From the sequence record MK250029.1: a DNA stretch of 64,000 nucleotides, one strand, 5' to 3'. The position numbers and the translations under genes are program-made. The stretch's first letter is position 1, and each line of letters begins with the position of its first letter. Under the pieces are notes generated by a model that ran no database searches, was not told where the DNA came from, and saw only the letters and a program-made list of their open reading frames with translations. This document shows, piece after piece, positions 11,399 to 43,200 of this stretch.

Positions 11399-12337
11399 AT
11401 GGCAAAAATGAAGCAAAATCTTTCTGATATTTTTTCAGGAGTTAATAAAGAATTATTGAATTCTACAAAGGATAAGTTTAACAAATTGTCAAGTGTAGAA
11501 AAGAAGAAAGTACTTGATAATACAAATAAACTTATGGAGACATTCTGTGATATTTGTGGTGTTGAAAATAAGTATCATTTGACAGAGGAAATGTTTGATG
11601 ATGCAAAAGAAAAGTGTAAGGAAACTACAAAAAATATCAAAGATTCTATTAAGGAATCAAAGGATAATCTTGCAGAAATTGCGCGTGATACATTGAATAA
11701 ATTGGGTATTTCTGATGAGTTTATTAAGTCATGTAAGGTTGATAATGATAAGATTTATATTGATGTTCAAATGCCAGTAGATTCAGATATTGATAATATT
11801 GATTTGGATATTAATAATGATGGTGTATCATATGATCATCAGGCAGAGGAACCACATAATGTACCAAAGTTTACTAGAAAGAATAAAGTAAAGAATAAGA
11901 AAGTTCGTCTTAGTAATAAGATTAAATTTAGAGATAATCATCCTGTTGTTGAGACAGAACAGATTGCAGATGATACTACACATATTCTTAATAGACTTAA
12001 GGCAGAAGCAAAAGAGAATGAAGTAAATGAATCAAAGATTAATTTGGATGATATTAAGCAGATTCTTATTGATAAGATTGAAGCTATTCTTGAAGATGAA
12101 AATACACATGCTTATACAGTTTATCCACGTGAAGGTGATGTACCAGCATCTGTACAGGTAACACTTGATGATGTATGTGGTTGCGTACGAGAACATCTTA
12201 ATATTCTTACAGATGTTGCAGATGCAATTAAGGATAAGTATGGTTTTCCAGAAGTATATGTACATATGATGGAAAACGATGATACTTATAATGATAATAC
12301 AGTTTCTGTAGGAATTATATGTATGTTGGAAGATTAA
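11399..12337 (+). CDS. Hypothetical acidic protein
   Basis: Long intact ORF followed by a terminator hairpin near 12375-12410. Confidence 0.8.
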   Translation: MAKMKQNLSDIFSGVNKELLNSTKDKFNKLSSVEKKKVLDNTNKLMETFCDICGVENKYHLTEEMFDDAKEKCKETTKNIKDSIKESKDNLAEIARDTLNKLGISDEFIKSCKVDNDKIYIDVQMPVDSDIDNIDLDINNDGVSYDHQAEEPHNVPKFTRKNKVKNKKVRLSNKIKFRDNHPVVETEQIADDTTHILNRLKAEAKENEVNESKINLDDIKQILIDKIEAILEDENTHAYTVYPREGDVPASVQVTLDDVCGCVREHLNILTDVADAIKDKYGFPEVYVHMMENDDTYNDNTVSVGIICMLED

Positions 12338-22100: not shown

Positions 22101-22199
22101 TTTAAATTTTATTGTCTGAATAATTTTATTATAAAGTTGTTCAGACTTTTTTATTTTTTATTATATAACAATATATATATAACGAAAAAATTATTATAC

Positions 22200-22796
22200 A
22201 TGGAAAAGAATTTTAATAACGAAATTGATGAGATGGATGATGTTTTGAATCCAGATGAAATAATTGATGATACTAGTTCAGATATTAATGAGGACGATAT
22301 TGTCACAGATGAGGATGATAATGAATATGTATCAAAGGAGTATGCAGATAAACTTATTTCAGAATTGAAAACAACAAAAGAAGATGCTGATACATGGAAG
22401 AATAAGTATATGTATGCATTATCTGATTTTGAAACATATAAGAGAAATTCGCAGAAGGATAAGCAGAATATTTTGAAATATGGTAATGAAAAAGTAATTA
22501 AGGATATTCTACCTATTATCGATGATTTTGATAGAGCATTTATGCATATGGATGCCGAAACAAAAGATGGTGTTATGCTTATCTATAAGAATTTTATTTC
22601 TGTATTAGAGAAACATGACGTTACTATTATTCCAGCAGAACCAGGTGATAAATTTAATGAGAATATTCATGAAGCAATTTCTGTGGTTCCTGCTATGGAA
22701 GATGAGCAGAAAGGCACAATTGCAGATTGTGTAACAAAGGGATATATGTTACTTGATAAAGTTATCAGATATTCTAAAGTAATTGTATTTAATTAA
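22200..22796 (+). CDS. grpE: Nucleotide exchange factor GrpE
   Basis: YALSDFETYKR, ILPIIDDFDRA, GDKFNENIHEAI, KGYMLLDKVIRYSKVIV. Confidence 0.93.
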   Translation: MEKNFNNEIDEMDDVLNPDEIIDDTSSDINEDDIVTDEDDNEYVSKEYADKLISELKTTKEDADTWKNKYMYALSDFETYKRNSQKDKQNILKYGNEKVIKDILPIIDDFDRAFMHMDAETKDGVMLIYKNFISVLEKHDVTIIPAEPGDKFNENIHEAISVVPAMEDEQKGTIADCVTKGYMLLDKVIRYSKVIVFN

Positions 22797-24011: not shown

Positions 24012-24086
24012 GGTCCGTCTGGTGTAATTGGTAACATGGCAGATTGTGGTTCTGCAGTACAGGGTTCGAGCCCCTAACGTGACCCA
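24012..24086 (+). tRNA. tRNA-His(GTG), imperfect acceptor stem
   Basis: Anticodon arm GCAGA-TTGTGGT-TCTGC, D-loop AATTGGTAA, T-loop TTCGAGC. Confidence 0.85.
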
Positions 24087-24153
24087 ATTTAATTTTTAAG
24101 TAAACTATTAATATAGTTCTTAATATAATTATAAGAATATTTTATATTAATAT

Positions 24154-25154
24154 ATGGAAATTAAATAGTTTACAGATGATGCATTAAAACATGTATTTGA
24201 AATATGTACATCAACAATGAATATATTGGAATTATTAGGTTATGAACCATATAAAATAAGAGGATAGAAATGTAAAGAAATATTAAAAATATATGCTAAT
24301 TAGATTGGTGTCAATATAGAAGATTATAAATCAAATAATATAAAATTTAGGATATATAATGAATTACATCCTGTATGTAAAACATGTGGTAAGGACTTAA
24401 CATATTTTCAATATAAGCAAAAATAGGAATTTTGTTGTTCATCATGTGCAGCAACTTATAATAATAAACATAGGATATTATCAAAAAATATACTTAAAAA
24501 ATTTTCATAGGAACAAAACATAGAAGAACTATAGTCCAGAAAACGAAATTATGTATTAAATACAGAGTTAATTAAACAAGGTAAAATCTTAAATGATAAA
24601 AATATTACATATAAAGAACATTATATAGATATAACCAAACTTGGCGTACATATATGTCAAGTATGCGGAAATACATTTATACCTTCAATTACAGTAAAGG
24701 GAAATATATCTAAGTCTACTACATGTTCTGATATATGTCATAAATAGTTAGTAAGTGAAAAATCAAAATAGGCACTTTAGAAACTTATTAATGACGGTCG
24801 GCATAAAGGCTGGATGTCTAGAAATATTACAAGTTATCCAGAAAATTTTTGGATTAATGTATTAAATAATAATCATATAGTTTTTACACGTGAATTTAAA
24901 GTAAAAAAACGTTGTGGATATTATTATTTCTTGGATTTTTTATAGAGCATAATGGATATAAAATTGATTTAGAAATAGATGGACAACAACATAAGTATAG
25001 GAAAGAACATGATATTAAGAGAGATGAATATCTTACATCATTAAATTATATCGTTTATAGGATTGAGTGGAATACTATAAATACGGAAAATGGAAAATTA
25101 TTGATGAAAGAAAAAATTGATAATTTTTTAAATTGGTTTAATAATTTAGAGTAA
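24154..25154 (+). CDS. Zn-ribbon plus Vsr/DUF559-like endonuclease inside the tRNA cluster; needs a -1 frameshift at 24936-24942
   Basis: Frame 0 is open (TAG=Gln) to YYYFLDF; the catalytic continuation IEHNGYKIDLEIDGQQH...RDEYL...VYRIEWN lies in the -1 frame. Confidence 0.75.
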
Positions 25155-25170
25155 AATTATTAAATTATAT

Positions 25171-25244
25171 ATGGTAGTAGTTCAATTGGTAGAATGCTAG
25201 TTTTGGGAACTAGTGGTTTGCGGGATCGTGCCCCGCCTACCATA
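25171..25244 (+). tRNA. tRNA-Pro(TGG), atypical T-loop ATCGTGC
   Basis: ATGGTAG/CTACCAT acceptor, CTAGT-TTTGGGA-ACTAG anticodon arm, GCGGG/CCCGC T-stem. Confidence 0.85.
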
Positions 25245-25362
25245 CAGAATCGATAAATCTGATATTATCCTTACGTAATTAATCAGATTTAAAACTTTAG
25301 ATAGTAAGGTATCTATATAATGGAAGTTCACGCCTAAGGGAAGATTTATACATTATAATTTT

Positions 25363-25437
25363 ACTCTGTTAGCTCAATTGGATTAGAGTAATTCGCTACG
25401 AACGAATAGGTTAGGAGTTCGATTCTCTTACAGAGTA
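25363..25437 (+). tRNA. tRNA-Arg(ACG)
   Basis: ACTCTGT/ACAGAGT acceptor, ATTCG-CTACGAA-CGAAT anticodon arm, TTCGATT T-loop. Confidence 0.92.
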
Positions 25438-25446
25438 CAAACATAT

Positions 25447-25519
25447 ATCTCTATAGTTTAAGTGAATAAAATAGGATTTTCCTAAATTCCAGTTACTGGT
25501 TTGATTCCAGTTAGAGATA
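25447..25519 (+). tRNA. tRNA-Arg(CCT)
   Basis: ATCTCTA/TAGAGAT acceptor, GGATT-TTCCTAA-ATTCC anticodon arm with one mismatch, ACTGG/CCAGT T-stem. Confidence 0.8.
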
Positions 25520-25629
25520 CATTAATTATTTTGATAAAAAATAAGAGAAATATATAGACTTTTATTTAATTTCAACATATACATTATGTTAATTGAATGA
25601 ACAGTTAATAATTAATAATAAAAATACTA

Positions 25630-26045
25630 TTAAAATGTGGGGTTTTGAGTGCCCATCATTTAAAGAGTTTCGAGAAGAAGACATTGTATGTAAAAGCATT
25701 AAGTTTCATTTAGCTGATGAAATGTAGTCAAGCGTGATGGTATCGATGTACATGGGTCCATCCGTATAACTTCGGGGAATCATAAGCATTAATCTTGGAG
25801 AGTACAGTTTTTAGTCTGAAATGACGAATTTTCCTACTGGTTGCTCAATATGATATTAAGAGTCGGAGATAATTATTTGTAAGTTCCACAATTACAAGAG
25901 GAAAATGGAATTAAGTTGTCGGAATAACGTGATTATTCTATGTGCGAGTAAGAGAATGAAAGTAGCATTATATGTATGGTGTACGTATGCATATAGAAAC
26001 AAAGCAAATAATAACCCTTAGAGAATTTGCCGAGAAAAGGACATT
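25630..26045 (+). ncRNA. Candidate large structured RNA in the tRNA cluster
   Basis: About 400 nt with raised GC, no long ORF and many local hairpins (TTTCAT/ATGAAA, TTGTAA/TTACAA, GAATAA/TTATTC, TATATGTAT/ATGCATATA). Confidence 0.4.
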
Positions 26046-26062
26046 AATAGTATTTATAATTT

Positions 26063-26221
26063 GCGGGTATAGCACAATGGTTAGTGTGTCGGTCTTCCAT
26101 ACAAGAATAAACTTGTAAAATTAAACTATATGCTAATAATAAATGTGGTATTATAAAATAAGAGTTCGAATCTCTTGCATATAGCAAACCGAAAATGTCG
26201 GTTCGATTCCGATTACCCGCT
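26063..26221 (+). tRNA. tRNA-Gly(TCC) interrupted at 37/38 by an 87-nt insert (26100-26186)
   Basis: Removing the insert gives a perfect cloverleaf: GCGGGTA/TACCCGC, GCAC/GTGT, TCGGT-CTTCCAA-ACCGA, GTCGG-TTCGATT-CCGAT, U73. Confidence 0.9.
26126..26187 (+). ncRNA. Anticodon-less mini-tRNA nested in the tRNA-Gly insert
   Basis: CTATATGC/GCATATAG acceptor-like stem, D-like arm with GG, canonical T-arm AAGAG-TTCGAAT-CTCTT, followed by CAA like neighbouring tRNA 3' ends. Confidence 0.75.
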
Positions 26222-26521
26222 CAAAGATAAAATTAGGTATACATAGTTTTGTATCGAAGCTTTATATTACCATTAGTTGTAATATTCAAATCGTTCGTTG
26301 ACATGGTTATTCCGTGATGTTAGTAGTAAGTTATAATTAATTTATAGCAAACGGAATATTAATAAAAACGTACTCGGCGTTTAAGTTGAATGTACCACGC
26401 TGCCCGTATGGTAGATATTTAATTAAGCATTTAATTAAGTTGAAACATATGTTTAAAAAACTTATGGTACCACGAGTGTTTTCTACGTTGTTTCACTCAT
26501 TTTTTTGATATAATAATATAT

Positions 26522-26578
26522 GAGAGTCATAACAGCAAATTTAGTTCTATTGTTTATTGGGATAACATAAGACTCTTG
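26522..26578 (+). ncRNA. T-armless tRNA-like element, Pro(TGG)-like
   Basis: 7-bp GAGAGTC/GACTCTT stem, ACAGCAAATT motif, TGTTT-ATTGGGA-TAACA arm, 3-nt connector where the variable loop and T-arm should be. Confidence 0.5.
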
Positions 26579-26594
26579 AATCAATTATATTAGG

Positions 26595-26655
26595 GGAGAT
26601 ATTACAGCAAATTATTATTTAGGATCATACTTTTAATATGAAATTCTTGTCTCCT
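26595..26655 (+). ncRNA. T-armless tRNA-like element, Lys(TTT)-like
   Basis: 7-bp GGAGATA/TGTCTCC stem, ACAGCAAATT motif, perfect arm TCATA-CTTTTAA-TATGA, 6-nt AATTCT replacing the variable loop and T-arm. Confidence 0.7.
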
Positions 26656-26663
26656 GTTTATTT

Positions 26664-26743
26664 GGGTAAATGCCTGAGTGGTCGAAGGGAATGATCTGCA
26701 AAATCATTATTATACGTCGTGTGTTCGAATCACACTTTACCCT
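26664..26743 (+). tRNA. tRNA-Cys(GCA) with an extended variable region
   Basis: GGGTAAA/TTTACCC acceptor, ATGAT-CTGCAAA-ATCAT anticodon arm, GTGTG-TTCGAAT-CACAC, U73. Confidence 0.9.
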
Positions 26744-27070
26744 CTAATATAAAATATTTCCGTGGTATACAGCACGTAAAAAGAGGTTGACTTGTATATT
26801 CTATAGACCTACTGTATAATAATATATATGATGTACATGTGAAACACCATGTTCTATTAAGAGTTCATTAACTGAGGTTAATTTTGAATTGCACTGATAT
26901 TAGATGCATAATATATAATGAATATAACGACGGTACTGTGAAATGACTATTATTTTTAGTTGCTTGGAAACGGCGTACGAAGTTTTTATAATAGTGGAAG
27001 TAATGATAAAACAGTTAAATGTAAATCTTTCTGAGACAATGGGGACAACTTGTAGTAAGAGAGTATTTTT

Positions 27071-27174
27071 GTTGATATAGTTTAATGGGAAAACACCCAA
27101 ATCCCAGGGATAAGAGATAATACTTTGAAATAGGTATTAGAAGATTTTAGATGGTTCGATTCCATTTATCAACT
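27071..27174 (+). tRNA. Aberrant or interrupted tRNA, identity undetermined (104 nt)
   Basis: Good acceptor GTTGATA/TATCAAC, D-arm GTTT/AAAC and T-arm GATGG-TTCGATT-CCATT, but about 30 extra nt and no clean anticodon arm. Confidence 0.6.
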
Positions 27175-27183
27175 CAAATTAAT

Positions 27184-27304
27184 GAAGTGTGTAGTTTAAT
27201 TGGTAAAATATCCTTTGAATAGGACTGTGCGCAGATAGAACATAATGTTAGTCATATTAATCGCATTATTGATAATGATGTTGGTTCGATTCCAACGACA
27301 CTTC
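27184..27304 (+). tRNA. Aberrant or interrupted tRNA, identity undetermined (121 nt)
   Basis: GAAGTGT/ACACTTC stem, D-loop AATTGGTA, T-arm GTTGG-TTCGATT-CCAAC, about 45-50 extra nt in the middle. Confidence 0.6.
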
Positions 27305-27590
27305 CTAATAAATAAAAAGATCTCGGTAATTAGATAAAACATTATATGAGTGAAGCAACTCACCATAACTGCAGATAAATGAGTGAGGGACATAAGAGTG
27401 TATGAAGAAAGATGGACTATGGACACCACCATATAATTGCGTTTTCAATAATAGTAAAGTAAACTTTAGTATAAGTTCCATTAACGCTAAAATAGAAACA
27501 TTGTTATTGAAGTCTACTATGCGTGCGATGGTTTAATGAAACCATTGTAGTTCTAAGGCATTGTAAAACGTTTTATTTATTAATTTTTAT

Positions 27591-27664
27591 GGCGAGATAG
27601 CTTAGTTGGTCAGAGCGCAGGATTCATATCCCTGAGGTCGTGTGTTCAAATCACACTTTCGCTA
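27591..27664 (+). tRNA. tRNA-Met(CAT), elongator-like
   Basis: GGCGAGA/TTTCGCT acceptor, CAGGA-TTCATAT-CCCTG arm, GTGTG-TTCAAAT-CACAC. Confidence 0.88.
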
Positions 27665-27779
27665 CTATTATTTTTTGATTGTTTATTTTTATAAGAGGTA
27701 TATCATTTTTTGGTATATCTCTTTTTTATTTAGGAAATAATGTGTATCTTTGAATTGTTATTAATAAAATAGTAATACA

Positions 27780-28400: not shown

Positions 28401-28847
28401 ATGAATACAACAGTTAAAATTTCTCCAGCACAGGTTTTCCCAGTAGCTAACAAGATTCGTGCAGCAAAGCACATCTCTATGAAGGAAGCATACGCAGAAG
28501 CAAAGGCACAGCTTATTGCAGAAGCAGAGAATGCAGTGAAGACTGCAGAGACAGTAGTTGAAACACCTACTAATGTAGTTGAGACACCAGCTAATATGAA
28601 GTTGCATACAGAGTTGGTAGAGAAGATGAAGAACGGAAACGTTAAGTTTGTATTCTTCAATAACAAGGGTAAGAAGATTACAACTACAGGTACTCTTGAT
28701 ATGTCAAAGGTTCCTACAAACCGTGAGGTTCAGGGTCGTAAGACTGCGAAGGATGAGAATACTCAGGTATTCTATGATGTTCGACATGGTGTATACCGTT
28801 CTTATCAGAAGGATAAGTTGGTAGAGATTATTTCAAAGAAGAAGTAA
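28401..28847 (+). CDS. SH3 beta-barrel (DUF2693-like) protein
   Basis: VKFVFFNNKGKKITTTGTL...QVFYDVRHGVYRSY resembles the Bacteroidota DUF2693 pattern; host-type promoter at 28347; terminator at about 28866-28913. Confidence 0.6.
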   Translation: MNTTVKISPAQVFPVANKIRAAKHISMKEAYAEAKAQLIAEAENAVKTAETVVETPTNVVETPANMKLHTELVEKMKNGNVKFVFFNNKGKKITTTGTLDMSKVPTNREVQGRKTAKDENTQVFYDVRHGVYRSYQKDKLVEIISKKK

Positions 28848-29252: not shown

Positions 29253-29852
29253 ATGAAGAAAAAAGTGATATTAAAGAAAATTTTATTATTTACGCTATTG
29301 TTTTTATTACCTTTCATATCAATAAATGCTGCAACTATTGATAGTAATAATAATGCGTATGGAGAAGTAAATGCAAAGACAACAGTAGTTAAACATACAA
29401 AGTCTAGTATTGAAAATTCGTTAGTTGATGAGGCTAGAACATATATCAAGTCGTTATATCCTGGTTGTCCAGATATAATTCCTAGTTATATTGTAAAAGC
29501 AGGTTTAGCAAATAATATTGATATTTGTTTTATGCTTGCTCAAACACAGTTAGAAACTACCTTTGGCAAGGCAGGTGTAGGAAGAACGTGTTCAAGACGT
29601 TCATTATTTGGTATCGAGAAAAGATACTATAAAACATATAAAGAAGCGATTAATGCGTATGTAGACGTATTGACTTCAAATTATTTAGTAAATGGCCGTA
29701 CAGAACAACATTTATTAAATAATTATGTTAATAAAAACGGTCATCGTTATGCTGGTAATCCTAAGTATGAATATCAACTTAAGAAACATTATAATACAAT
29801 TGCATCTACAACAAAAATAAAGCAATTGCAACGCCAGTACAAGAGATTATAA
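29253..29852 (+). CDS. GH73 glucosaminidase/FlgJ-like peptidoglycan hydrolase with an N-terminal signal or anchor
   Basis: Basic then hydrophobic N-terminus, LAQTQLETTFG (putative catalytic Glu), SLFGI, RYAGNPKY (YATDPxY-like). Confidence 0.75.
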   Translation: MKKKVILKKILLFTLLFLLPFISINAATIDSNNNAYGEVNAKTTVVKHTKSSIENSLVDEARTYIKSLYPGCPDIIPSYIVKAGLANNIDICFMLAQTQLETTFGKAGVGRTCSRRSLFGIEKRYYKTYKEAINAYVDVLTSNYLVNGRTEQHLLNNYVNKNGHRYAGNPKYEYQLKKHYNTIASTTKIKQLQRQYKRL

Positions 29853-37279: not shown

Positions 37280-40200
37280 ATGGCAGGATTTATGGATAAT
37301 AACAAATATGGTCATCATAATGTTCCACCTGTTGGCCTTAATGGATTTAATAAGATATGTTTCACTGATTAGAAAGAAGCAGAAAATATGTTGTTAAATA
37401 AGGCATTGTTACCAGGTTAGCTTACATTTGCATACTATTATGATAATGATTCAGCTAATGGTGTTAATGTCATGGCAGCAGTAGGTACATTAAAAGGTGA
37501 GAAAGACAATCATATTTTTGTTAGTTATGAAACTATAAATTAGTTAATTGACTCTATAGATGATTCTTTGGATGATTATGATACTAGCTTAATATATATT
37601 CGTAAGGAAGTTATGAATAAACTTTCTGTTTTAGAAGATGAATAGACTAAATTATCAAATAAGGTTGATAACATCTTACCAGATATACAACAAAAGTTAG
37701 AATCATTAGAATCAGCAGGAAAAGAATATACAGATACAAAAGTTAATGAATTATCTGAATATATTAATTCTTCTGTGATGGAAAAGATTAATAATTATGA
37801 AGGTACAATGTCTGATATGATATTAGATGCATCTTCTAAATTAGATAACATGCAGAAGGAATTTGAATCAAAAGCAGAGGAAATTCTTAATAGAAGTGAA
37901 GATATATATAATACTCTTGATGTTTCTCTTCGTAATTATGTTGATAATGAAATGTTAGGAATGCAGCAGTTCGTTCATTCTGAAACAACACAAGCAGTTA
38001 TTGACATGAATGCAAAATATGCTGTTTTGAAAAAAGCAGTTGCATCTATAAATGCGTCAGTTAATGATGTAGATATTAAACATAACAAAAAGGAAACAGA
38101 ATTAAATAGAACTATTGTTGAAACAGCAACACAATTAACAGAAGATTTACAGGTTGCTAATGTTTCACTTATTAATTATATTAATCAATAGTCAGAATTA
38201 TTTAATAAAAGAATCGATAAAAAGATTGATGAACTTGAATTTAATGTAAAATCTAAAAATATTGATTTAACAAATACGGTAGAAGAATATCAGCATAATA
38301 TTAAAAACGATATTGCAGTATTCAATACATCTATTAGAACTTTTGTTAAATCAAGTCTTGCCACAGTTTAGACAGATGTAAATTCAAAGTATTCAGAATT
38401 AAAAACATATGTTACATCAAATGATGCATCTTTATTAAATTATGTTAATGCACTTGAAGTTGCATAGAGAACATATATCAATAAGCATGATTCTGAAATT
38501 AAATCTTGGATTGCAACTGCTAATACTTCTTTATTTAATATTGTACGTTCAACTGATAGTAAGTTAAAGGATGATATTGATGCAATAGATTCACGTCATC
38601 AGGCAATGTATCGTTCAGTAGAATCAAGACTCGATAACCTTATTGATGATATTTCAACAGATCTTAATATCCTTGTTAATGAATATAATAAGGAAATTAA
38701 AAACTTTACACGTAAACATGTAAGCGATCTTGAAAATCAACTTAAAGTTCAAAATGTAAGTCTTGTAAATTATATTGACGATAAAGCACAGGAAGGGGTT
38801 AATGAAACTCGTTTACTCAATGCATCTCTTCGCACACAATTAAAGAATACCATTAATTTACTTAATACAAGTATTAATAATTCAATTCAATATACAGACG
38901 ATGAAATTTCTAATTTGAAAACATATGTTGATAATGAAAATTCATCTATTATAACTTATGTTGATAATCAAGATTCAAAAGTTAAGTTATATGCAGAATT
39001 AAAAGATAAAGAAGTAAAAAATTATATTGATGAATTAGAAGAACAACTTAAGAAATATTCTAATGAAGGTGATTCTTCCGTTGTTAATTATATTAAATTA
39101 ACAAAAGAGAATATTGAAGAATTTGTTAAAAAGCAGGATGAAGATACATTAAAGAAAGCATATATTCATGATGATGAAATCAGAAATAATATGATTGCAG
39201 ACTATAATGCATTTGTTCGTAAGCAAAAAGATATTGATGCATCTTTATTAAATTATGTTAAAAATACAGATACTTCATTATTTAATTATATTAAGAATAG
39301 AGATGAACAAATAAAGAGATGGATTGCTATTGGTGATACTTCAATTTATAATTATTTCAAGTCTATTAATACATCATTATTTAATTATGTAACAAAGAAA
39401 GATACAGATTTACAGAATACTATTGTAAATACAGGTACAAAGTTACAAAATGATATGGAAGTATTCAAGACAAATGTTAATTCAAAGATTGATTCTGCGA
39501 ATATTAATCTTGATAATAAGATGAATTCTTATAATACTTCAATGATGTCTTATATACAGTCTAATGATGTTTCTATTATAAGTGCTGTTAACAGTAAAGA
39601 TCATGATCTTGAAACAAAATTGAATAATGAAATTTCTAAAGTAAAAACACAATTAGAAACACAGGATTCATCAATTTTGAATTATGTATTAAATGCTGAT
39701 TCATCTATTAAGAATAATATTGCTATTATTAACGATACAATTAATAATGAACTTAAAATTGATATTAAGAAACTTAATACAAAAGTTGATGTAACAGAAT
39801 CTTCTATTGTTAATTATATCAATACTAATGATCATAAATTAGGTTCTTATATTGATGCAGAAATTACTAAAGCTACAAATAATTGTAAAGCAAATGATTC
39901 TTCTGTTGTTAATTTTATTAAGAAAGAAGATTCATCTATTGTTAATTATGTTAATGGTACAGTTAAGTAGGATTTACTTAATATGATTAATGATACAAAT
40001 ACATCAATTATTAATTATGTTGCTGCGAATTCTTCATTATTTAATTATATAACAAATAATGATACATTACTTAAAGCACTTATTGAAAGTAAAGATGGTT
40101 CTATTCTTAATTCATTAACATCTGCAGATGCTTCAATTATTAATTTAATAGAAAAATACAATACAGAATTAACAAATAAAATTAATTCAAATGATTCTTC

Positions 40201-43200
40201 TATTAATTCAAAAGTTGATAAGTTCAATACTTCTACATTTAGTCATTTTACATTACAAGATGCGAATATTCAAGCTAAATCTGATTTAGCAGATACATCT
40301 ATTGTAAGCTATGTAGACTCACAACTTTCTGGATTTAATACAAGTATTAATCAATCAGTTTCAAATATTAATAATAAGATTGATTCTGTAAAGACTGATC
40401 TTGAAAATACTATAGAAACAAATAATACTTCTATTGTTAATTATGTTAAAGCGCATGATGCTGATATTGAAAACATGATTATAACAAATAAGGAAGTTTA
40501 TAACTATATTAATACACAAGATACATCTATTGTTAATTTTATTAAGAAACAAGAATCAGAACTTGATAATAAAATTGATATTGTAAACAGTAACCTTAAT
40601 AATAAATTAGATACACAGAATGCAGAAATACGTCAGGAAGTTATCGATAAGGCAAATGAGGTTTATTATACATTATCAAATAAGATAACAGATTTAAGTA
40701 ATACTGTACAGGATAATGATACTTCTATTCTTAATTATGTTAAAGCATCTGATACTGATTTAAATAATAACTTATTACAGTTAGATACTAAACTTCATAA
40801 TGAATTAGACAATAATAAGACAGAATTAAATAACACTATTAATTCAGCTATTACAGATTATGAAAATAAGAGAACTGATTTTGAAACTAATGTTAATAAT
40901 GCTATAAGCGAATTTAAAACAGATGTTTCAACAAAATTCTCTTCATTCAATACAAAGCTTCATAACGAAATGAATGAGTTAATATCTAATGTTAATACAA
41001 GTATTAATGTTACAAATTCATCTACTATTAATTATCTTGAAAATGAAATTTCTAAAATTGATAATAAAGTTAATAATTAGAATTCTTCATTATCAGTTGC
41101 ATTTGAAAATTATAAAACAGCAACAGATACAATTCTTAATAATAAATTAGAAACAGTTAAATCAGATCTTGATAATACAATAAAAGATAAATTCACTGAA
41201 GTTGATATTACTCTTGACAAAGCAAAGACTGAATTAATTGCAACTAATGAAATATTTAAGAATGAAATTAATAATAGTATTATTAATTTAAATACAGAAG
41301 TTGACAATAAATTAAATGATTTCAAATCATATGTTGATTCAGAAAATATCAGTCAGGATATTAAAAACGAAACACGTTATAATACTTTAAAGAATGATAT
41401 TTCAACATTAGATAATCAAGTAAATACTCGTATTACTACACATGAAAAATTATGTGCTGCTGATATTGAAAATGCAAAAATTGAAATCAATAATAAGGTT
41501 AATACTGTTAATTCATCATTAGTAAGTTATATTGATAAGAATGATACTGAGATTAAACAGGAATTTGCAAATAGATTAGCTAATTTAACAAATTATGTTA
41601 ATACACAAGATGCTACATTAGATAGAAAGATTGATAAAGTTAATCATGATTTAACTGAAACAATTACAGATGTAGATTTACGTGCAACTACCGGTATTAA
41701 TAATCTTAGAACTGATATGAATTATGAGGTAGATAGATTAGATAATAAGATCGATGCCACAGAAAGAAGTATCAGAACTGATTTTGAAACAGCAGATAAT
41801 GCATTACGAGACGAAATAAAAAAGGTAGATCATGATATTCGTCAAGATATGACAACAAAGGATGATGATTTACAATAGCAAATATCAGACGCTAGTAAAG
41901 ATCTTAAACAATTTGTTATTGATTCATCTAATATGATTACAAAACATATTGCTAATGTTTCTTCTGATATTCATGATGTTATTTCCGATACATCTGCATT
42001 AATTTGGGGTTATATTGATAATACATCTAATGCTATTGTTGATTATGTTAAAATATCTGATACATCACTTAAAAATTATTCTGATATAGAAGATAATAAA
42101 TTAAAATTAAGAATTGAAAATGTTTCTTCTAAATTGATAGATGTAAGTAATGCATTAGATAAACTTATGGGTACTGGTGATGTTACTACAGCTATAGATA
42201 CATTTAAGGAAATTGAAGAATTCTTAAAAGCATACAGTAATAAAGATTCATTATCAGCATTATTAAAAACTAATTCAGATACTGATAAAGCATATGCTGA
42301 TACTATCTTACAACATTTTAAAGAATATATAGAGAATTATATATTAGATGGTTCTACTGATATTATCAATAAGATATATAATACATCAAATGATATTGTT
42401 CATTTTATTTAGGATGTTTCTAATAAATTTAAGTCTTATATTGATATTCAAGACGGAAAATTAGATGGAAAAATTACTACATTAAGAACAGATCTTGATA
42501 CTACAAATAGTAATATTACTGATTTAAAAGAATATGTTGATAATCAGGATGCAGCAATAAACAGAAAGATTACAATTTTATCAAATACAGTAGATCAAAA
42601 TAAGACAGATATTAATCAGAAAGTTGATTTATTGAAAGATTATGTTAATAATGATGTTTCTAATAAGATTGTTGCGTATGTAAATAATGTTTCTAATAAC
42701 ATTGTTAAATATATTGATAATACATCTAATAAAATTGTTGCATATGTAAATAATGCTTCTAATAAGATTGTAACTAAATTTGAAACAGAAGTAGGAAGAT
42801 TAGATACTCGTATTAATAATACTTCTGACTATATTGTTCATTATTTAAATGATACATCAGATGCTATTGTTGAATATATCACAACAAGATCAAATACTCT
42901 TAATACTAAAATTGATGATGTTTCTGATTATATTGTTCACCAATTTAATGATGTTTCAGACGGTTTATATAAGTTAATAACACTTAAGTATAATAATTTA
43001 TCATCTTCTATTGGAGACACGATTAAGAAACATAATGAAGATATATAGAATGTTCAACGATATGTTAATCAATAGATTGCAGATACAACTGATACATTAA
43101 GACAAGAAATTAAAGTTGTATAGGATAATGTAACTGCAGTAGATAGAAAATATAATGAAAAGTTTGTTACTTTATATAATAAAGATCTTAAAGATGTTAA

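Follow-up and report, generated by a model that had tools for sequence, protein, structure and literature searches.

A structural family of short tRNA-mimic introns, apparently mobile, in the anticodon loops of Lak megaphage tRNA genes

We analysed a 64,000-nucleotide stretch of sequence record MK250029.1 (the window; window coordinates equal record coordinates minus 62000), which belongs to the Prevotella phage Lak-C1 and in which a tRNA-Gly(UCC) gene is interrupted in its anticodon loop by an 87-nucleotide (nt) intron that folds as a small hairpin followed by a mimic of a tRNA. This intron and those found in Phe, Thr and Asn tRNA genes of Lak phages (the Asn intron having been published as a 'Tyr' intron) form one Lak-specific structural family, whose junctions lie at constant points of the intron structure and at 36/37 or 35/36 of the host tRNA, and which behaves, as judged by comparing genomes, as a mobile element; taken jointly, we hold these statements with very high confidence. 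The introns are likely removed at the RNA level, and we tentatively propose a pathway in which enzymes of ordinary tRNA maturation would take part. New here are the shared intron family, the positions of the junctions, the Asn identity of one host gene, and the signature at the 3' end of the introns.

Lak phages are gut "megaphages" of about 540 kb that read TAG as glutamine (Devoto et al., 2019; PMC6784885), and the Gly intron itself is already known from the same paper, where it was published as one of the "enigmatic introns" of the abstract. The main text of that study remarks that the tRNA-Thr(TGT) intron "itself may encode a tRNA" and describes the introns as identical across cohorts, and its supplement reports identical introns in the tRNA-Gly(TCC) genes of A2, C1 and pig fragments. 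Table S6 gives the C1 Gly intron letter for letter at record positions 88100-88186 (window 26100-26186, drawn as 37/38), together with Phe, Thr and 'Tyr' introns. The object is therefore the same as ours; the Gly, Phe and 'Tyr' introns are listed there as having "no hit in rfam" (the A2 entry with the identical Gly sequence is so marked), the shared architecture of hairpin, linker and mimic is not described, and no mechanism is proposed (Devoto et al., 2019; PMC6784885). In later literature on Lak and other recoded phages we found no mechanism for the Lak tRNA introns.

Window positions 25900-26400 are 100% identical to positions 87900-88400 of Lak-C1 (MK250029.1) and 99.6% identical to Lak-A2, while Lak-A1 and the baboon Lak-B genomes match the segment only in two pieces. 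The host gene (26063-26221) scores 54.3 bits with the Rfam tRNA model RF00005 (gathering score 29), with model positions 1-71 all matched and 89 nt in the anticodon loop skipped by the alignment. ARAGORN missed the gene as it stands and called a 72-nt tRNA-Gly(UCC) when the insert was removed in silico. The host gene is an intact tRNA-Gly(UCC) of Lak-C1 whose anticodon loop is interrupted by an 87-nt intron without an open reading frame (ORF), and the two tRNA halves and the insert that an earlier reading of the letters alone (the original prediction) had described at these coordinates were borne out. Exon 1 (26063-26098, plus strand, as are all features of the locus) holds the acceptor 5' strand, the D arm, the 5' strand of the anticodon stem and loop bases C32-C36, and ends in CTTCC; its boundary follows from the family rule given below, and a boundary shifted by one nucleotide to either side also fits Lak-A1. 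The intron (26099-26185) is exactly absent from the Lak-A1 ortholog. Exon 2 (26186-26221) begins with A37 and A38 and continues with the 3' strand of the anticodon stem, the variable loop, the T arm, the acceptor 3' strand and a discriminator T, after which the tRNA has a 3' trailer CAA (26222-26224) and no encoded CCA.

Within the intron, a 5' hairpin, P1 (TACAAG, loop AATAAA, CTTGTA; 26100-26117), starts one nucleotide 3' of the 5' junction and is followed by a single-stranded linker, AAATTAAA (26118-26125; family consensus AAATYAAW). An acceptor-like stem then opens with CTATATGC (26126-26133), right after which TA at 26134-26135 stands at the place of U8-A9 in a tRNA. Next come a D-like hairpin of 6 base pairs (bp) with the loop AATGTGG, which contains GG (26136-26154), a T arm (AAGAG, loop TTCGAAT, CTCTT; 26160-26176), and the 3' strand of the acceptor-like stem, GCATATAG, with a terminal C (26177-26185). 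The minimum free energy fold and the centroid fold of the 87-nt insert are the same and show this architecture of hairpin and tRNA mimic (-16.6 kcal/mol, z -3.64, with 0 of 200 shuffled sequences as stable), and all parts of the insert were checked letter by letter. The original prediction had named the TACAAG/CTTGTA hairpin, the 8-bp stem, the GG hairpin and the TTCGAAT T arm, all of which are present in the letters, as are the terminal C and the AA after it; its description of the insert as a tRNA mimic that lacks an anticodon arm, with an acceptor and T-arm stack and a D-like loop carrying GG, agrees with the minimum free energy fold. Scanned alone, the insert matched no Rfam family, the tRNA family RF00005 included, at E values up to 10; the sister intron in tRNA-Thr passes RF00005 at 30.4 bits.

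A covariance model built from the Gly insert alone found the other Lak tRNA inserts (Asn, Phe) from end to end, with E values of 2e-5 to 1e-3, and the family model CM R2 scores the Gly intron at 95.2 bits (E 1e-15), with all defining features readable in its sequence. Members are 79-141 nt long and share one order of parts: a single nucleotide, the motif UA(A)CA opening a hairpin of 4-6 bp with an A-rich 6-nt loop, the linker AAAUYAAW, a stem starting with CU, a first inner hairpin whose loop carries GG, in some members one more hairpin, a T arm with the loop UUCGWWU, the return strand of the stem, and a final C. In every member, 13 nt of fully Watson-Crick-paired return strand separate the T loop from the C. 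Each also shows the features of a tRNA-like processing signal: a stack of 13 perfect base pairs, a G-C pair closing the T loop, a D-like loop that contains GG, and a single unpaired C. In the family alignment, itself a fit to the model, pairing extends to 97.7% of cells, and changes on both sides occur at 10 of the 19 pairs, distributed over three helices: P1 (3 of 6 pairs), the 8-bp acceptor-like stem (4 of 8, with 100% pairing) and the T-arm helix (3 of 5, likewise 100% paired). When partners were slid by 1-3 columns as a control, pairing was only 20-49%. Linker columns A20, A21, A22, T23, A25 and A26 are invariant (n=9 family sequences), and the D-like hairpin is the least conserved module, its stem being reduced to 5 bp with pairing kept in an IMG/VR variant (L017).

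A second model, run over five complete Lak genomes, found 2-4 copies per genome, all within tRNA genes. Weaker covariance-model matches at window 25589-25657 and 40161-40243, Lak-A1 141650-141732 and G002 11618-11714 lie outside tRNA genes, look like chance, and were set aside. The family pattern searched in IMG/VR and metagenome contigs gave many raw matches that were due to chance and were removed by requiring complementary acceptor strands; after this filter, only Lak-like contigs remained among the matches listed. When the published introns were located in the GenBank records, two further cases came to light. One is a Phe(GAA) intron in Lak-C1 (record 460477-460630; L006 5978-6131, minus strand; T loop TTCGATC versus TTCGATT), so that Lak-C1 has three introns including this one, compared with two in the published table, which states that the Phe intron was not detected in C1; the other is a diverged Phe intron in Lak-B1. 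Two further ideas on the structure were dropped: binding of exon 1 (loop bases 32-34) by the 5' strand of P1, because it comprised only 3 bp in an inconsistent register over four lineages, and a pseudoknot between the linker and the T loop, because its register varies.

The boundaries of each intron were defined by intron-less alleles. For Thr, the intron-less gene of Lak-C1 equals the Lak-A1 gene minus T...C, giving the junction CTTGT/AATGAGC at 36/37 without ambiguity, and for Phe, an intron-less gene with identical exons on two IMG/VR Lak contigs gives CTGAA/AATCC, again at 36/37. The gene published as tRNA-Tyr(GTA) (Lak-C1 record 464888-465051; L006 10388-10551, minus strand) has intron-less alleles with the same exons (L158 5533-5603; L159), and because these read CTGTTAA, the host gene is a tRNA-Asn(GUU) in which, as judged from these alleles, the intron sits inside the anticodon at 35/36. 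This identity is consistent with the G73 discriminator, the short variable loop and a best similarity to other Lak Asn(GUU) genes, and Lak genomes carry a separate tRNA-Tyr with a long arm. At the three unambiguous empty sites the introns read CTTGT/T...C/AATGAGC (Thr), CTGAA/T...C/AATCC (Phe) and CTGT/A...C/TAATC (Asn), with C as the last intron nucleotide in each case. In the Gly gene, CA is repeated at both junctions (CTTC-CA-TACAAG ... ATAG-CA-AACC), so that 35/36, 36/37 and 37/38 all fit the intron-less allele of Lak-A1; the Gly junction, ambiguous by itself, is placed at 36/37 by the family rule that the intron starts one base before UACA and ends with C. No intron-less copy of the C1-type Gly allele was found in IMG/VR.

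Two corrections to the published record follow: the 'Tyr' intron interrupts a tRNA-Asn(GUU) gene, and 37/38 is not where the introns sit, Gly itself being ambiguous. A split at 37/38 had also been part of the original prediction, where it supported an analogy with canonical archaeal and eukaryal introns; the position is not established for Gly, and with sister introns at 36/37 (Thr, Phe) and 35/36 (Asn) the analogy fails. The position in the tRNA varies and the position in the intron structure is fixed, which argues against a ruler on the mature tRNA body as well as against the canonical 37/38 comparison.

Several comparisons indicate that the introns move. Copies of the Asn intron are 97-99% identical even where the exons around them are only 64-80% identical. 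As judged by gene order, Lak-B1 has this intron in the other Asn(GUU) paralog, which lies between Arg-UCU and Glu and has an intron-less ortholog in Lak-C1. Each intron is present in some genomes and exactly absent from others, with identical exons, near-identical flanks and no target duplication. Insertion of the IS200/IS605 type was rejected, as the upstream target tetranucleotide is not conserved. Free-standing HNH or Endo VII genes occur among the tRNA clusters (window 24154-25044, plus strand, a weak match; L006 2199-2849, 3529-4173 and 7926-8336; L008 3753-4277 and 7927-8583), and one of them adjoins the second Asn locus in both clades, from which it is reasonable to suppose that the intron DNA may be spread by homing in trans by such nucleases. 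Several of these genes contain many in-frame TAG codons, and their layout resembles that of T4- and T5-like phages. At the Gly locus (window 25663-26621 compared with Lak-A1 L010), 7 of 19 differences lie within 25 nt of the intron site, all of them in the D loop and anticodon stem with pairing kept; co-conversion of flanks as a general feature was rejected, because such clustering is seen at Gly only and not at Thr, Phe or Asn. The suggestion that the insert shields the anticodon loop from anticodon nucleases found no support; near-identical Lak genomes carry or lack each intron, which gives it the look of a dispensable mobile element.

The exons that surround these introns show no sign of decay in the Phe, Asn and Gly genes. 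At the Phe locus, identity between Lak-A1 and Lak-B1 is 93% in the exons, 80% in the intron and about 57% in the flanks. Both T stems have changed in a compensatory way, that of the exons from C-G to T-A and that of the intron from ATGG/CCAT to TTAG/CTAA. The intron-bearing Asn alleles keep their cloverleaves with three different, fully paired acceptor stems, and the intron-bearing Gly allele differs from the Lak-A1 allele at three positions in each strand of the anticodon stem with pairing kept. Degraded exon halves in relatives, which the original prediction had named as the mark of a dead gene, were thus not what the Gly, Asn and Phe alleles showed. Compensatory changes and paired exons are hard to reconcile with dead genes, and make it likely that the introns are removed at the RNA level.

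The 3' ends of the introns resemble those of ordinary Lak tRNAs. We tabulated the bases after the discriminator in 25 Lak-C1 tRNA genes (window 24012-27665 and L006). In a genome of about 26% G+C, 24 of the 25 have C at position 74; 23 have A or T at position 75 and 19 have A at position 76, and CCA is encoded by a single gene. On the 5' side, 20 of these genes are immediately preceded by a T. With so few encoded CCA ends and a trailer starting at C74, Lak tRNAs must be cut endonucleolytically near C74 and finished by a CCA-adding enzyme, and this suggests that Lak-C1 tRNAs have an unusual and uniform site of 3'-end processing. The junctions of intron and exon 2, C/AAA (Gly), C/AAT (Thr, Phe) and C/TAA (Asn), have the form C/(A/U)A, which matches the trailer signature N73-C-(A/T)-A of 24 of the 25 ordinary genes. 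Since a 12-bp stack and a thirteenth paired base are followed by the same N73-C74/(A/U)-A, the 3' splice site resembles an ordinary Lak tRNA 3' end, and an origin of this junction in an RNase Z-type cut is a serious possibility, which we would stop just short of calling probable. Excision by tRNA-processing enzymes, as originally predicted, therefore keeps its footing at the 3' end, which lies at the expected cut of a tRNA 3' nuclease in all four members, and lacks an enzyme at the junction of exon 1 and the intron. RNase P and RNase Z could not excise the whole insert between them, because exon 1, after an RNase P cut behind AAATTAAA, would still carry 27 nt of intron, from the first nucleotide through the 5' hairpin to the end of the linker.

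In the pathway that we propose, the intron's own structure, rather than a ruler on the host tRNA, would set the cuts. A host tRNA 3'-end endonuclease of the RNase Z type would take the mimic for a pre-tRNA and cut after the final C, which would give exon 2 a 5'-phosphate on A37. RNase P would then free the mimic from the hairpin and linker, and the phage CCA-adding enzyme would finish the end of the mimic. A putative endonuclease would cut one nucleotide before the UA(A)CA hairpin and leave exon 1 with a 3'-OH, and a phage ligase of the Rnl2 family would seal the 3'-OH/5'-phosphate nick in the anticodon loop, giving GGTCTTCC-AAACCGA as the predicted spliced junction for Gly. The end chemistries are compatible: cuts by RNase Z and RNase P produce the 3'-OH and 5'-phosphate ends that Rnl-type ligases join, and RtcB needs the opposite chemistry. 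We regard the full pathway, a mobile intron with its 3' cut made by a tRNA 3'-end nuclease, as a tentative proposal, and the more specific third route of tRNA splicing, in which RNase Z would cut at the 3' junction and RNase P within the intron, with an Rnl2-type ligase resealing the loop, as somewhat more doubtful still.

The original prediction had suggested searching the phage for RNA repair and splicing genes, and part of the expected set was found. Lak-C1 encodes at least two proteins of RNA-ligase families, both matching the PHROG family "RNA ligase" and both Rnl2-like (281 amino acids, record 208026-208871, PF09414 62.5 bits; 227 amino acids, record 446917-447600, 33.7 bits), and a CCA-adding enzyme, and the annotation of Lak-A1 lists rnlB, cca and THG1. 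Searches of Lak-C1 for the splicing endonuclease EndA (PF01974), RtcB, bacterial RNase P RNA and the RNase Z family PF12706 gave no match. Searched in parallel, a Bacteroides control genome, which stood in for the actual Prevotella host on the bacterial side, contained RtcB, PF12706 and RNase P RNA; EndA PF01974 was absent from it as well and was found only in four archaeal controls. A search for Rnl1 (PF09511) gave no match in Lak-C1, with the control likewise silent.

A number of observations weigh against this pathway. We found no enzyme candidate for the cut between exon 1 and the intron, one base before UA(A)CA, and the hairpin would stop an exonuclease from trimming the exon 1 side, where such trimming could in any case not give an exact end. 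The stack of the mimic is 13 bp rather than 12 bp, so the cut would fall either one nucleotide past the classical RNase Z site (after C74) or after the discriminator on an 8+5 stack. Rnl2-type ligases such as that of T4 prefer nicks in duplex RNA to loops, and the Lak ligases are distant relatives recognised by Pfam and PHROG matches only, the 281- and 227-residue proteins having no sequence match in the PDB. The conservation of the linker and the hairpin loop exceeds what a passive leader for RNase P would need; it would fit a ribozyme or a dedicated protein site, and suggests that these parts may serve as a specific protein site or have a tertiary role in the RNA. The covariation, besides coming from a fitted alignment, covers just four independent lineages. 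Lastly, contigs from four RNA libraries that lie on window 25950-26350 contain the unspliced gene only and none of the spliced junctions that the original prediction had proposed to look for, at a contig level that would hide rare or short forms and with DNA carry-over possible. One 191-nt contig that joined exon 1 to a different 3' half was rejected as a spliced product, being a tRNA-Gly of another organism.

In a rival reading, the element would be a selfish insertion that is never removed from RNA, the interrupted genes being dead or dispensable because the host supplies the tRNAs, and spread and loss taking place in DNA only. The unspliced gene is indeed abundant in the metatranscriptome libraries X17, which is from pig and size-fractionated, and X27 (contig depths 4036 and 1611) with no spliced form beside it, an intron-less allele exists for every intron, so that each is dispensable, and homing-type HNH genes abound in the tRNA clusters. 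We nevertheless consider this reading unlikely, since the same few bases of the anticodon loop are targeted in four tRNAs, which is unexpected for a persisting element that cannot be removed. The Phe intron has moreover been kept since the A/C and B clades split, within exons that are far better conserved than their flanks and whose T stem shows the compensatory change; in the Gly and Asn alleles with an intron, the stems have stayed perfect through many substitutions. The depths in X17 and X27, over a tRNA region free of ORFs, agree with a published remark that Lak intergenic regions are highly expressed, and here too DNA carry-over is possible.

Equally improbable in our judgement, and for other reasons, is a new small ribozyme, in which the hairpin, the A-rich linker and the tRNA-like core would cleave one or both junctions to leave cyclic phosphate and 5'-OH ends, the exons being sealed by host RtcB, or in which the RNA would splice itself by transesterification. 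Such an activity would account for the strong conservation of single-stranded parts (UA(A)CA, the loop ARUAAA and the linker AAAUYAAW), for a 5' junction with no phage nuclease assigned to it, and for both cuts being set by the intron's own structure, and RtcB is present in the Bacteroides control genome. Set against this, no Rfam ribozyme family matches even at an E value of 10, the smallest member has only 79 nt, most of them in a plain tRNA-like fold, and no conserved pseudoknot was found, the register of the pairing between linker and T loop not being constant. The 3' junction also copies the trailer signature of ordinary tRNAs, for which a ribozyme has no need.

The two established classes of tRNA intron fare much worse. 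An intron of the archaeal or eukaryal type, in which a bulge-helix-bulge (BHB) is cut by a splicing endonuclease and the exons are joined by RtcB, would also be short, ORF-less and located in the anticodon loop, and tRNAscan-SE in eukaryotic mode draws the Gly intron at 37/38; we consider it very improbable because neither Lak-C1 nor the Bacteroides control has an EndA domain and the phage has no RtcB, the family's unambiguous junctions fall at 35/36 and 36/37, a hairpin starts 1-3 nt after the 5' junction, an unbroken 13-bp helix runs up to the 3' junction, and in the folds a 4-bp helix with two 3-nt bulges cannot form. A degenerate form of the group I intron, which is what usually interrupts bacterial tRNA genes, would suit the bacterial and phage context, the mobility and the site, known bacterial group I introns being likewise inserted within or next to the anticodon; it is the least probable reading of all, since members of 79-141 nt without a match to RF00028 are far too small, as the original prediction had held, no Rfam ribozyme matches, the intron ends in C and not in G, exon 1 ends in C, U or A in place of a conserved U, and the fold is that of a tRNA mimic and not a P3-P8 core.

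Other features of the region were recorded in passing. In two tandem tRNA-like genes (window 27071-27174 and about 27185-27305), the acceptor, D and T arms are normal and no anticodon arm is recognisable; the first contains a conserved ACCCAAATCCCAGGGATAAGAGAT block and a variable hairpin, the second a region of about 55 nt before the T arm. Both are kept in Lak-A1 and Lak-B1 with compensatory changes in the acceptor and T stems, and they are not members of the intron family. A 76-kb phage contig from IMG/VR that is not a Lak phage (3300032373_000004; L018 5802-5919, minus strand) carries a tRNA-like gene of 118 nt (Rfam, 49.7 bits) with an insert of about 45 nt, including a 7-bp hairpin, in its anticodon region, which may be another kind of short phage tRNA insert. 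Just 5' of the tRNA-Cys gene lies a 62-nt element (window 26595-26656, plus strand) with a GGAGA/TCTCC closing stem, which probably serves as a processing hairpin or represents a small structured RNA; it scores 33.7 bits with Dictyostelium Class I RNA, below the threshold of 41.5. The genes nearby code for a GrpE homologue (140 bits; window 22137-22796), a WYL_2-domain protein (28401-28847) and a glucosaminidase-domain protein (29253-29852), none of which is an obvious RNA-processing enzyme.

To our knowledge, short tRNA introns spliced by proteins are regarded as a hallmark of archaea and eukaryotes, and those of bacteria as group I ribozymes; the Lak introns, "enigmatic" since 2019, fit neither class. 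With archaeal and eukaryal introns (BHB, EndA or Sen endonuclease, RtcB or Trl1) they share a short ORF-less intron in the anticodon loop and presumed removal and ligation by proteins; they differ in having no BHB and no EndA, in their positions at 35/36 or 36/37, in carrying a tRNA mimic, and in the expected chemistry of the ends, 3'-OH and 5'-phosphate rather than cyclic phosphate and 5'-OH. Group I introns of bacterial tRNA genes, such as those in cyanobacterial tRNA-Leu, Azoarcus tRNA-Ile and Agrobacterium tRNA-Arg, resemble them in lying in or beside the anticodon of tRNA genes of the bacterial world and in being mobile, and some that lack an endonuclease of their own are moved in trans by a free-standing one; the Lak introns have about a third of the size, no core, no terminal G and no Rfam match.

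Closer in structure are the t-elements of plant mitochondria and the mascRNA of MALAT1, in which an acceptor and T-arm mimic without a working anticodon arm likewise lies inside a longer transcript. RNase P and RNase Z cut at those mimics to define the ends of RNAs, and nothing is religated. They are the closest analogue for the way in which the 3' junction of the Lak introns would be made, with the difference that in Lak the flanks must be rejoined and that there is an extra 5' hairpin and a second cut. The tRNA-like domain of the bacterial Y RNA YrlA, with acceptor, D and T arms that form the tRNA elbow and no anticodon arm, is similar in shape, whereas YrlA is a free-standing gene that binds the Ro protein and the Lak insert is an intron with no Rfam match. 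For the joining step, the nearest parallel is the tRNA repair of phage T4, in which damage by PrrC is healed by Pnkp and sealed by Rnl1. There, as proposed for Lak, an ATP-dependent RNA ligase of the phage acts on a break in the anticodon loop, and CCA-less phage tRNAs of T4 need host RNase BN/Z and a CCA-adding enzyme, as those of Lak would; the T4 system, however, repairs damage inflicted by the host and does not splice, and the Lak ligases are Rnl2-like.

The puzzle of the Lak introns can now be put as a concrete hypothesis in biochemical terms, which names the enzymes, the chemistry of the ends and the exact sites at which cuts are predicted. If the pathway is correct, its by-product would be a CCA-tagged mini-tRNA, and, with cuts measured from the intron structure, the element could occupy different positions within the anticodon loop of any tRNA, which would explain the spread of the family over four tRNA species. 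The introns would then be a selfish element made harmless by borrowing universal tRNA-processing enzymes, as well as a compact and portable RNA cassette for enzyme-guided excision, and their removal would represent a third splicing route for tRNA, distinct from both the self-splicing of group I introns and splicing by BHB recognition and EndA.

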